Positions 44,884-63,179 of a DNA stretch of 64,000 nucleotides are shown here, in pieces. The position numbers and the translations under genes were made by a program. The notes below the pieces were generated by a model that was given only the letters and a program-made list of their open reading frames with translations, ran no database searches and was not told the origin of the DNA. The stretch is from positions 186,001 to 250,000 of the forward strand of contig NIVC01001581.1 of NCBI GenBank assembly GCA_002269645.1, read 5' to 3'. Numbering within the stretch: the stretch's first letter is position 1; each line of letters starts with the position of its first letter. The stretch comes from Macrostomum lignano (lineage: Eukaryota).

Positions 44884-47800
44884 ATGGACATTTTTGCTTA
44901 TTTAAAAGGCAATCCTTCATCCGGTGAAAGTGCTTCATCTCAGCCGCAGTCGCAGCAGCAGCAACAGTCTCAAATTACAAGGTAGCTAAATTAGGATTAC
45001 ATCTATGAAATATTGACCTATGAGCCGGTAATCTATGGCTGTACTATGTACATTCTGTAGGATATCTATGGCTGTACATGCAGTAGGATATCTATGGCTG
45101 TACATTCTGTAGGATATCTATGGCTGTACATTCTGTAGGATATCTATGGCTGTACATTCTGTAGGATATCTATGGCTGTACATGCTGTAGGATATCTATG
45201 GCTGTACATGCTGTAGGATATCTATGGCTGTACTATGTACATGCTGTAGAATATCTATGGCTGTACTATGTACATGCTGTAGGATATCTATGGCTGCACT
45301 ATGTATATGCTGTAGGATATCTATGGCTGTAAATGCTGTAGGATATCTATGGCTGTACATGCTGTAGGATATCTACGGCTGTACATGCTGTAGGATATCT
45401 ATGGCTGTACATGCTGTAGGATATCTATGGCTGTACATGCTGTAGGATATCTATGACTGTACACGCTGTAGGATATCTATGGCTGTAACATAGGTAATAT
45501 AGCTGATACGCTACTACTACTACTACTACTACTACTACTACTACTACTACTACTACTACTACTACTACTACTACTACTACTACTACTACTACTACTACTA
45601 CTACTACTACTACTACTACTACTACTACTACTACTAATACTACTACTACTACTACTACTACAGGAATCAACACCGACCTTTGCTTCGCTCCGAGACTGAC
45701 GCCAGCGCCGACCAACCGCCCCAGTGGCGTCGCGGCTCGCCTCAGGCTGGGAGCAACAGCAGCAACGGCAGCTCGTCAACATCGAAGACCCCGGCAGTTC
45801 GTCGGGCAGTGTCCAGCCTCATCGACTATTCCCGACGGCCGGTTTTCACGTCGTTCAACAATCGGCAACTGGCAGGCTTGGAGAGCTCAGCGCTCCGGCT
45901 CGGACTCTCGTCTGTGGCTGCAACTCCGCTCACCGAGGCTGATCAGCCACCAGATGACCCTTGCAGCAGCAGTGGGCCTTTGAATTATCTGCATGTGAGT
46001 ATCATGGTTTCAGTGTTGCTGCTTATTGGGGTGAAGTGAGATGTTGCGATAAAAAGTAGGTGGGCAGATGTGCTGAGGAATGAAATTTAGTGCAAACATG
46101 GTCAGGACAGATGTAGACAGGGGTATTTAGATAGAGGTGGAAAGAGATAGGCAGAGGTGGAGAGAGGTAGACAGAGGTGGAGAGAGGTGGAGAGAGGTGG
46201 AGAGAGGTAGACAGAGGTGGAGAGAGGTAGGCAGAGGTGGAGAGAGGTAGACAGAGGTGGAGAGAGGTGGAGAGAGGTGGAGAGAGGTAGACAGAGGTGG
46301 AGAGAGGTAGGCAGAGGTGGAGAGAGGTAGACAGAGGTGGAGAGAGGTAGACAGAGGTGGAGAGAGGTAGACAGAGGTGGAGAGAGGTAGACAGAGGTGG
46401 AGAGAGGTAGACAGAGGTGGAGAGAGGTAGACAGAGGTGGAGAGAGGTAGACAGAGGTAGAGAGAGGTAGACAGAGGTGGAGAGAGGTAGACAGAGGTGG
46501 AGAGAGGTAGACAGAGGTGGAGAGAGGTAGACAGAGGTGGAAAGAGATAGACAGAGGTGGAGAGAGATAGACAGAGGTGGAGAGAGGTAGACAGAGGTGG
46601 AGAAAGGTAGACAGAGGTGGAGAGAGGTAGACAGAGGTGGATAGAGGTAGACAGAGGTGGAGAGAGGTAGACAGAGGTGGAGAGAGATAGACAGAGGTGG
46701 AGAGAGGTAGACAGAGGTGGAAAGAGATAGACAGAGGTGGAGAGAGGTAGACAGAGGTGGAGAAAGGTAGACAGAGGCGGAGAGAGGTAGACAGAGGTGG
46801 AGAGAGGTAGACAGAGGTGGAGAGAGGTAGACAGAGGTGGAGAGAGAGGGAAAGAGCAGAATGGTTGAGCAACAACCAATTTCTGATTAACTCTAGCTGT
46901 CATATTTAACTCAACTTGTACCGTGTACTTTCAGCCATTTAAATATACTACGTTTTCAAGGTTGAAACAAAGCTTACCAGCAGCGAACAAAATCAATCAA
47001 TGAAAACAGTTGGCTCAATGTTTTATCACACAAAAATTGTCGTCCATGTAGAAATTTAGCAAAAATTGCTGTGCATAGCTTCTTATTTAGCAGAATAAAT
47101 ACATTTTAGAACGAGAAATTGTAACGCATTGGGGAAGCCAGCCAACATATTTGAGTACCAATGCGAGTACAAGCTCGCAGACTTTCTGCTGGCAAATTTG
47201 CTACTTTTTCTATCCAGCCATTTTTGTCGCAATTTCACAGGCTTTCTGGAGTAAAGCGAAAAAATCTATTTTTACTACTACTCTACTTTCTAGTAGATAA
47301 GTTAGGTTATCGATTGCAAAGTTTATCTTAGAAAAAAATCTATAAAAGACTCTAAAGACTCTTGACCAAAAAAATTAGGGCATTTCTCTAGATATTTCCT
47401 AGGGCTCACGTCGATCTGAGGGGGTCACGTCGTTTTAAGGGTAAGGGGGTCAAGCCGGGCTGAGATGTCACGTCGTTCTGAGGGGTCACGTCGGTCTAAG
47501 GTGGTCACCACGTACTGAGGGGGTCACATCGTTCTGAGGGGGTCACGTCGTTCTGAGGGGGTCACGTCGTTCTGAGGGGGTCACGTCGGTCTAATGGGGT
47601 CACGTCGAACTGAGGAGGTCACGTCGTTCTGAGGAGGTCACGTCGTTCTGAGGAGGTCACGTCGTTCTGAGGGGGTCACGTCGTACTGAGGGGGTCACGC
47701 CGTTCTGAAGTTTTCACATCGTTTTAAGGGTAGGGGGTCAAGCCGGTGTGAGGGGGTCACGTCGGTCTAAGGGGTCTGACTTTGTTAGTTAGTGGAATGA

Positions 47801-62800: not shown

Positions 62801-63179
62801 TCTACCCCAGTAGCTTATCTACCCTGCTTATCTACCCCAGTAGCTTATCTACCCTGCCAATCTACCCCAGTAGCTTATCTACCCTGCTTATCTACCCCAG
62901 TAGCTTATCTACCATGTTTATCTACCCCAGTAGCTTATCTACCGTAGTATCTTATCTACCCTAGTAGCTTATCTACTCTGCCAATCTAGTCATCCACTTC
63001 AGCTCCACCAACTCCACCTCAGGCAAAGCTACCAGGTGTGGGTGCACTCCAGGGCGGCTCAGAAAGGGTGAAGCAGCTGGAGCAGGAGGCCGCTGAACAG
63101 TCCAAAGCGCGCCAGCTGAAGCAGTTCAACGAAATGGCGAAGCACGTTGACGCGCCCGGCACCATTGTGCTCAATGAAG
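44884..63179 (+). CDS. Large cytoskeletal/muscle-type protein: two smoothelin-type motifs, low-complexity S/T/A/K linkers, seven I-set Ig domains and a C-terminal helical repeat; more than 1,800 aa, probably continuing beyond the window
   Basis: Eighteen phase-compatible GT-AG exons: 44884-44981, 45664-45994, 49950-50227, 50519-51031 (one C missing at 50722-50725), 51634-51765, 52260-52349, 52983-53019, 53164-53306, 53396-53546, 54654-55235, 55456-57278, 57532-57949, 58935-59058, 59149-59338, 60428-60514, 60593-60668, 61302-61519, 63023-63179. Ig F-strand motifs: DMGNYRV, DGGEYRL, YSGEYTA, DSGKYEI, HAGLYAC, DSGRYKV, DEGQYTV. Smoothelin-like motifs: DEEDSQLQTALKEAATFDERRRVRKALR and DQDLLSKMLMKTEDFDLKKKIRARLKEL. 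The low-complexity exons are less certain than the Ig exons. Confidence 0.8.
45045..45487. repeat. 26-bp intronic tandem repeat
   Basis: Unit GTAGGATATCTATGGCTGTACATGCT. Confidence 0.93.
45511..45661 (+). repeat. (CTA)n array running directly into a 3' splice site
   Basis: About 50 CTA units ending ctacta cag|GAAT; single interruption at 45637. Confidence 0.95.
45634..45638 (+). promoter_or_regulatory. Putative intron branch point CTAAT (branch A at 45637)
   Basis: YTRAY consensus 26 nt upstream of the acceptor G at 45663. Confidence 0.6.
46130..46846. repeat. 20-bp purine-rich intronic repeat
   Basis: Unit AGAGGTGGAGAGAGGTAGAC. Confidence 0.95.
47402..47775. repeat. 19-20-bp intronic repeat
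   Basis: Unit GGGGGTCACGTCGTTCTGAG. Confidence 0.9.
48470..49090. repeat. 24-bp intronic repeat
   Basis: Unit GGCGCCAATCCTGACACTAACATT. Confidence 0.92.
51110..51575. repeat. 23-bp intronic repeat
   Basis: Unit GGCGCCTCCCTGACACCTAAATT. Confidence 0.92.
51865..52170. repeat. Intronic repeat, unit about 29 bp
   Basis: Unit GGGATCAAGAATCGGGGATCTAAGATAAT. Confidence 0.88.
53640..54585. repeat. 16-bp intronic repeat
   Basis: Unit CTTCACCAGTTAGACA. Confidence 0.95.
58081..58848. repeat. 69-bp intronic repeat, about 11 copies
   Basis: Unit beginning GTAATTCTAGGCCAGTCGCTTGCACCCACC; period measured 58141 to 58210. Confidence 0.93.
59460..59820. repeat. 22-bp intronic repeat
   Basis: Unit ACAGACACAGAGAAAGGACAAG. 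Confidence 0.9.
60690..61226. repeat. 9-bp intronic repeat (CAGAATCCC)n
   Basis: Direct inspection. Confidence 0.93.
61531..62985. repeat. 30-bp intronic repeat, about 48 copies
   Basis: Unit CTACCCTGCTTATCTACCCCAGTAGCTTAT, starting about 10 nt after the donor. Confidence 0.96.

Follow-up and report, generated by a model that had tools for sequence, protein, structure and literature searches.

A probable long smoothelin isoform with seven immunoglobulin-like domains in the flatworm Macrostomum lignano

Locus and gene model

The window analysed here is a stretch of 64,000 nucleotides from the flatworm Macrostomum lignano (assembly GCA_002269645.1, contig NIVC01001581.1, positions 186,001 to 250,000 of the forward strand). 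Window positions 44884-63179 probably represent the 5' four-fifths of a single gene, composed of BOX15_Mlig025120g1 and unannotated exons upstream of it, which would encode a long smoothelin-family isoform of ~1898 residues. The predicted protein begins with a disordered N-terminus, followed by Smoothelin motif 1, an A/S/T-rich linker 1, two immunoglobulin (Ig) domains (Ig1-2), a linker 2 of 317 residues, five further Ig domains (Ig3-7), Smoothelin motif 2, three helices, a disordered linker and a CH domain.

The exon chain (Table 1) was built from stop-to-stop reading frames and splice-site scans, anchored on the 100% identical UniProt entry A0A1I8JM63 (P0002), and the DNA 3' of the window end was read on the same contig, which matches window positions 44857-64000 at 100% identity over 19,144 bases and identifies the window as nuclear DNA. 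The complete model has 21 exons and 1898 residues, the last 1372 of which are identical to GenBank PAA66201.1, the product of BOX15_Mlig025120g1. The interval had been delimited in a first-pass annotation made from the sequence alone, and both of its ends proved exact, with the ATG of MDIFAYLKG lying at 44884 and the final base ahead of a strong GT donor at 63179. The same annotation had proposed a consistent frame of 18 exons. The frame is indeed open, with GT-AG junctions, consistent phases and no stop codon, but we recovered 17 exons in the interval.

The likely place of this mismatch is 50228-50824, which is open in all three frames and is read as coding in a paralog model (P0003). We treated it as an intron, since the window copy differs there from its homeologous copy on NIVC01000073.1 (L001) by indels of 2, 11 and 62 nt; given these indels, an extra coding segment of the P0003 type is unlikely in the window copy. 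The least certain part of the model is the three small linker 1 exons (exons 6-8), a region that is also read differently in P0003.

Minisatellite and microsatellite arrays fill introns at 61520-63022, 43536-44200, 45500-45700, 46100-46900 and 59400-59830. These arrays are open in several frames and produce spurious 'ORFs' of 200-270 residues on both strands.

Table 1. Exons of the predicted long smoothelin gene, in window coordinates. A slash marks an exon boundary; L001 is the homeologous copy on NIVC01000073.1.
Feature	Position	Strand	Evidence and remarks
Exon 1, start codon, MDIFAYLKGNPSS...	44884-44981	+	A0A1I8JM63 (P0002) N-terminus, 100% identical; donor AAG/gtagct; predicted, GenBank calls no gene
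Exon 2, disordered N-terminal region	45664-45994	+	P0002 mapping; acceptor ...ctacag/, donor CAT/gtgagt
Exon 3, disordered, ADEGFVRSPPP...RMRQRQQR	49950-50227	+	P0002 mapping; 99.3% identical to L001; 3' boundary uncertain
Exon 4, ends in first half of Smoothelin motif 1, ...AFDEEDSQLQTA	50824-51031	+	P0002 mapping; donor GCG/gtgggt, phase 0; 94.2% identical to L001
Exon 5, second half of Smoothelin motif 1, LKEAATFDERRRVRKALRD...	51634-51765	+	Acceptor ctgcag/CTC, phase 0; alternative in-frame acceptor 51700
Exons 6-8, A/T/S/K-rich linker 1	52260-52349, 53167-53253, 53396-53546	+	P0002 mapping, GT-AG junctions; 96.7-100% identical to L001
Exon 9, Ig1 (54665-54946) and Ig2 (54950-55234)	54654-55235	+	Pfam I-set E = 1.2e-14, 2 stretches; hhalign, AlphaFold and Foldseek on Ig1
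Exon 10, linker 2 (55235-56405), Ig3 (56406-56714), Ig4 (56715-57008), first half of Ig5	55456-57278	+	707-aa open frame; identical to PAA66201.1
Exon 11, second half of Ig5 and whole Ig6	57532-57949	+	I-set E = 1.5e-19; CAG/gtgcga ... cttag/GAA, ACG/gtgagt; 99.8% identical to L001
Exons 12-13, Ig7	58935-59058, 59149-59338	+	I-set match; local Ig HMM 75-116 bits; junctions
Exons 14-15, Smoothelin motif 2 (NIEQCTDQDLLSKMLMKTEDFDLKKKIRARLKELYE)	60428-60514, 60593-60668	+	PF12510; both 100% identical to L001
Exons 16-17, three conserved helices (A..E.K.+.LK.[YF].E[ML]A)	61302-61519, 63023-63179	+	Alignment across molluscs, spiders and Limulus
Four CH-encoding exons past the window end	Window-equivalent 64150-64270, 64954-65185, 65336-65487, 65849-65990	+	Same contig; also in homeolog L001

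The C-terminal module

The gathering cut-off of the Pfam Smoothelin family (PF12510) is 23 bits. Motif 2 exceeds it in two existing protein models, with 26.7 bits in the short UniProt model P0008 and 24.3 bits in P0071; the latter also contains an I-set match of 176.5 bits and a CH domain (PF00307) of 74.2 bits. The CH domain, which the first-pass annotation had suggested might be found by extending the model downstream, is encoded 1-2 kb past the window end by four further exons on the same contig, which also encode a linker, and ends ...DWKCVFTYLQMFYKKFRNFDKSKPST. Its closest solved relatives by sequence are the CH domains of human SMTN (2d87, E = 2.5e-36) and SMTNL1 (2jv9), and the same two structures lead a fold search with a paralog model, at 54% identity. 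This fold search returned CH domains only and nothing informative for the helices. With PF12510 matches above the gathering score and one smoothelin-type CH domain at its C-terminus, the protein belongs to the smoothelin family on all the sequence criteria that we tested.

The AlphaFold model of an M. lignano paralog (P0009, 56% identical) places the motif in two helices (residues 17-26 and 30-58), followed by three more (63-91, 97-122 and 132-160), a disordered stretch and a confident CH domain. The helical repeat reported at first pass is therefore present, with three helices rather than two, but it is not new: molluscs, spiders and the horseshoe crab have it in conserved form in their short smoothelin-like proteins. 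These short invertebrate proteins (~300-430 residues; spider, Limulus, bivalves and M. lignano BOX15_Mlig001580g2) are among the closest known parallels to the gene. The last ~380 residues of the flatworm protein are a complete copy of them at 33-46% identity, including the helical repeat and a conserved A..F.QMD patch, whereas in the flatworm gene the module is spliced onto ~1500 residues of upstream sequence.

The vertebrate smoothelins (SMTN-A/SMTN-B and SMTNL1/2) likewise carry PF12510 motifs N-terminal to a single C-terminal CH domain, and SMTN and SMTNL1 provide the best solved relatives of the flatworm CH domain. They differ in that the flatworm protein has seven Ig-like domains and the 317-residue linker between its motifs; to our knowledge, vertebrate smoothelins have no Ig domains. 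The three conserved helices after motif 2 may be a further difference.

Ig domains and linkers

All seven Ig domains named at first pass are present, five of them (Ig2 and Ig4-7) being strong I-set domains and two (Ig1 and Ig3) divergent. The five are strong Pfam I-set matches, with E = 7e-55 on the annotated protein, far beyond chance. Ig3 is missed by Pfam, but hhalign aligns it to a profile of the family's Ig domains with a probability of 86.6% over 88 columns. Ig1 is degenerate, and its hhalign alignment to the Ig profile is confined to the C-terminal half. A single-sequence AlphaFold model nevertheless gives Ig1 six β-strands with pLDDT values of 71-81, and in Foldseek the model of Ig1-2 matches PDB chains containing two Ig domains, including titin I67-69. 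Ig3-7 occupy window positions 56406-59323. The best solved relatives of the Ig block are titin I65-70 and Z1Z2, MyBP-C and myomesin.

Both linkers had been described at first pass, the first as S/T/A/K-rich and the second as ~310 residues long and elastic-looking. Their presence stands, but PEVK-like elasticity does not. Linker 1 consists of 46% S+T+A+K and 26% P+E+V+K, and the corresponding values for linker 2 are 53% and 31%. Both linkers are thus A/S/T-rich, and at only 26-31% P+E+V+K these four residues dominate neither of them, so we rejected PEVK-like elasticity on composition. Both linkers look disordered from their sequence. Between 55680 and 56000 (residues 740-835), linker 2 contains the element KRT[SV]IVRET[GT]PE twice, followed by a stretch rich in SSAPA(S/T). 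The repeat may be a short linear binding motif or a phosphorylation motif.

The tandem I-set domains and their closest solved structures recall titin, kettin, myotilin and palladin, as does a sequence with no evident signal peptide or membrane segment. Unlike those proteins, however, the flatworm protein has Smoothelin motifs and a CH domain, and its linkers are not of the PEVK type. Pfam scans of P0002 and P0071 found only Ig-type families, CH and Smoothelin; Fn3 and protein kinase domains, by which titin, twitchin or obscurin would be recognised, were not found. The flatworm protein is not a titin-like or PEVK protein.

Upstream exons and Smoothelin motif 1

Residues 1-286 form the disordered N-terminal region that had been noted at first pass; it is rich in S, A, R and G. 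Motif 1 is split by the intron between exons 4 and 5 (junction DEEDSQLQTA/LKEAATFDERRRVRKALRD), and the choice of acceptor is critical. With the acceptor at 51634, motif 1 scores 26.0 bits against PF12510, so that both smoothelin-type motifs proposed at first pass exceed the cut-off; with the acceptor at 51700, 66 nt downstream, there is no match. Acceptor 51700, which is used in both existing predictions (P0002 and P0003), deletes the core of the motif. The segment in dispute, 51634-51699, differs from L001 by three substitutions, all at synonymous third positions, which gives modest support to its being translated. More generally, the N-terminal exons are 94-100% identical between the homeologs, compared to about 84-88% for most introns.

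The support for exons 1-8 is thus indirect, consisting of ab initio predictions, homeolog conservation, the Pfam score of motif 1 and analogy with other species, and several results weigh against them. We saw no transcript evidence for exons 1-8 or for acceptor 51634, a region in which GenBank has no gene call and P0002 and P0003 both use acceptor 51700 instead. A homolog search with the N-terminal 526 residues returned no matches, not even P0002, the candidates presumably having been swamped by low-complexity words. An alternative is that the long protein is real but begins at or near the Ig1 exon, and that exons 1-8 with their 'motif 1' belong to another gene, an untranslated leader or non-coding DNA. 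GenBank gene calls are absent over 44857-54856, the N-terminal models are ab initio and mutually inconsistent (P0002 compared to P0003), motif 1 depends on an acceptor not used in any annotation, and the N-terminus apart from the motif has no detectable homolog, all as this alternative would have it.

We nevertheless judge a start near Ig1 unlikely. The GenBank coding sequence of PAA66201.1 begins at an internal ATG, 54857, in the middle of Ig1, and the model has no earlier methionine back to exon 5; the coding sequence must therefore extend upstream. For the same reason, a gene caller that requires an ATG would start at 54857 if the 5' part were missing or broken. The Ig1 exon is open from its acceptor, with no methionine before residue 527, so a start there would truncate a folded domain. 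In addition, exons 3-8 are markedly more conserved between the homeologs than most introns, the changes in motif 1 are all synonymous, and Patella, Owenia, Mizuhopecten and Watersipora all have Smoothelin motifs N-terminal to their Ig block (see below).

One gene or two

Translation of the exons from the Ig block to the helices matched three M. lignano proteins at 95-100% identity. The GenBank models of this assembly derive from genome-guided transcript assemblies that were divided only where trans-splice or poly(A) sites had been seen experimentally, and TransDecoder was used to call their open reading frames (PMC5730564). Because the C-terminal 1372 residues of our model are identical to the transcript-derived PAA66201.1, a single mRNA carries both the Ig block and the smoothelin module, as the first-pass proposal of a hybrid gene implied. 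In all three homeologous copies (P0001, P0070 and P0071), the Ig block and motif 2 are kept in one GenBank gene.

The UniProt entries, which come from another, WormBase-derived annotation, point the other way: in them, an Ig protein (P0002) is separate from a short CH protein (P0008 and P0072). It might be argued from this that there are two independent genes, an Ig gene ending after Ig7 and a short smoothelin-like gene, and that the fused model is an artefact of read-through or precursor RNA. The UniProt division falls exactly at this point, with P0002 ending VTVEKKPQ and P0072 starting MSESSAEV. Met 60449 aligns with the starts of the short smoothelin-like proteins of other species and of UniProt A0A1I8G485, and the short M. 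lignano paralog BOX15_Mlig001580g2 is a stand-alone gene with no Ig exons within 10 kb upstream. Furthermore, ~7% of assembled M. lignano transcripts are multi-gene precursors (PMC5730564). The GenBank pipeline cuts such precursors at observed trans-splice and poly(A) sites, yet Ig1 to CH stayed one gene in three homeologs. The exon 13-14 splice is in phase and has strong GT and AG sites. Ig domains are found directly upstream of the same module in six other species, a metatranscriptome contig contains both in one continuous reading frame, and the octopus RefSeq annotation has both a long (X23) and a short (X34) form for the same gene identifier. Taking both sides together, we consider the existence of two separate genes very improbable.

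A short mRNA would not exclude the long one, given that short and long isoforms can coexist. A short isoform of 379 residues starting at Met 60449, consisting of motif 2, the helices and the CH domain, is likely on sequence grounds; P0072 is a model of this kind. It could arise from an internal promoter or a trans-splice site, and would parallel vertebrate SMTN-A/B and octopus X34/X23, in which long and short isoforms share their C-terminus. Every current annotation of the locus is incomplete: GenBank starts inside Ig1, UniProt splits the gene, and P0002 and P0003 skip the exon segment encoding motif 1.

The homeolog L001 and its GenBank protein, PAA91773.1, deserve a brief comment. PAA91773.1 is truncated ahead of the CH domain only because of one extra A in an A-run (19044-19050) before the CH exons of L001. 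Alternative acceptors 10 and 19 nt downstream, considered for the out-of-frame CH exons, were dropped when comparison with the window contig and three other models revealed the single extra A. A second indel, a 1-nt deletion, lies in the equivalent of exon 5 (about 6104). These single-base indels could be long-read homopolymer errors or reflect early pseudogenisation or decay of that copy.

Ig-bearing smoothelins in other Spiralia

A profile of the short smoothelin-like proteins was searched against 1.84 billion representative sequences, and 142 matches were examined for Ig domains. Many long proteins end in the same C-terminal module, and seven of the 142 also carry Ig domains. Six of these can be named, all of them predictions: Mizuhopecten OWF42675.1, Patella KAK6191500.1, Owenia CAH1801843.1, Mytilus VDI08897.1, Octopus XP_036369634.1 and Watersipora XP_067932720.1. 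They represent a scallop, a limpet, an annelid, a mussel, an octopus and a bryozoan, and several have been automatically named 'Smoothelin'. The Mizuhopecten protein, one such 'Smoothelin', has 2458 residues and a sister isoform automatically named unc-89-like. Each of the six has 2-4 I-set domains, and N-terminal Smoothelin motifs are present in four of them (Patella, Owenia, Mizuhopecten and Watersipora). An uninterrupted Ig-Ig-Smoothelin-CH reading frame is also present on a marine metatranscriptome contig of 2.2 kb (protein P0017). This contig is probably from an annelid because its protein is 51-56% identical to sequences from Ridgeia and from a likely polychaete contaminant. The long forms that we checked from flies, a starfish and an acorn worm have no Ig domains; for the flies, this agrees with the first-pass statement that insect smoothelins lack them.

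The spiralian predictions share a layout of 0-3 N-terminal Smoothelin motifs, a central I-set block, and then a Smoothelin motif, helices, a linker and a CH domain, the C-terminal module being 33-46% identical to that of the flatworm. In the flatworm model, too, the I-set block lies between an N-terminal Smoothelin motif and the Smoothelin-helices-CH module. The Ig blocks differ: the other spiralian proteins have 2-4 canonical I-set domains in one uninterrupted block, whereas in the flatworm a long linker divides seven domains, of which two are degenerate, into groups of 2+5. A domain-by-domain comparison of the Ig domains with those of Owenia, Patella, Mizuhopecten, Octopus and Watersipora revealed no collinear pattern, not even between Owenia and Patella, and so gave no support for one-to-one orthology between Ig domains of different phyla.

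The architecture, which had been proposed at first pass as possibly undescribed, is thus not unique to this gene, given that the same layout is present in uncharacterised predictions from molluscs, an annelid and a bryozoan. Judged from these predicted sequences, an Ig-bearing smoothelin variant is widespread in Spiralia and already present in the databases. As far as we searched, the literature contains neither a description of Ig-bearing spiralian smoothelins nor functional data on them, and no mention of the locus tags was found. The top match of the smoothelin-like profile is a JGI metagenome protein of 1979 residues (P0073); the profile matched it in nine stretches, so this single predicted protein may contain several smoothelin/CH modules.

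One evolutionary scenario, which we put forward as tentative and rather doubtful, is that a long smoothelin with Ig domains was an ancestral scaffold of spiralian, possibly bilaterian, smooth-type muscle, tying an actin/tropomyosin-binding module to titin-like Ig anchoring. The Ig block would then have been lost in vertebrates, echinoderms and arthropods, and in the flatworm lineage this ruler or tether would have been lengthened into the 2+5 arrangement with a long spacer. The conservation of a smoothelin module together with a titin-like Ig block in at least four spiralian phyla bears on a protein that is widely used as a marker of contractile smooth muscle and whose molecular action is still debated.

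Possible function

Vertebrate smoothelins decorate the actin filaments of contractile smooth muscle, and the CH domain of SMTNL1 binds tropomyosin and calmodulin. The Ig domains of titin, MyBP-C and myomesin serve as protein-binding and spacing modules. By analogy, the long flatworm isoform is most likely a scaffold of the muscle actin cytoskeleton. Its C-terminal module is the likely filament-binding end because it is a close relative of the vertebrate smoothelin/SMTNL1 module; the CH domain and helices would attach the protein to the actin or tropomyosin filaments of muscle cells, as in those proteins. The titin-type Ig block may bind other cytoskeletal partners, and the disordered A/S/T-rich linkers may act as flexible spacers that give reach between the two ends.

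Thin-filament anchoring and a role in muscle are inferred from knowledge of the family and from two indirect expression reports. One found a smoothelin-like protein to be enriched in the catch muscle of a scallop (PMC5963113); in the other, on single-cell data from Schistosoma japonicum, Smoothelin is a marker of the muscle cluster (PMC13355927). Both reports are thus from other species.

The protein could also be a smoothelin-family scaffold outside muscle, organising cortical or junctional actin in epidermal, neuronal or germline cells. Single CH domains similar to type 2 are also found in MICAL, EHBP1 and other non-muscle proteins, and long insect smoothelin-like proteins have been automatically named after neuronal microtubule-associated proteins, though only because of their low-complexity sequence. 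Against this, the closest solved CH domains are those of SMTN and SMTNL1, the nearest counterparts of the Ig block are in titin, MyBP-C and myomesin, and the smoothelin genes examined in a flatworm and a scallop are markers of muscle (PMC13355927, PMC5963113). A non-muscle scaffold therefore seems to us rather improbable. For the muscle scaffold, M. lignano, for which a transgenesis method has been published, offers a tractable system in which to ask what the smoothelin module is tethered to and how the cytoskeletons of invertebrate smooth and catch-type muscles are built.

Other genes in the window

The window also contains two tandem copies of a GH47 (α-mannosidase) gene on the forward strand, at 4469-5931 and 10316-11623. 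The second copy is an intact open reading frame of 435 residues (PF01532, 381.8 bits). In the first copy, the coding sequence passes between two overlapping frames near 5356-5443, suggestive of either a frameshift or an indel in the assembly. A PHM/DBH-like copper type II ascorbate-dependent monooxygenase is represented on the reverse strand by exons at 31607-32284 and 33382-33897, with its N- and C-terminal domains (PF01082 and PF03712). Smaller open reading frames encode a PLAC8-family protein (23358-23831, forward strand), an EGF domain followed by a hydrophobic stretch (37034-37576, reverse strand), and a possible seven-transmembrane protein with no Pfam match (25465-26166, forward strand).

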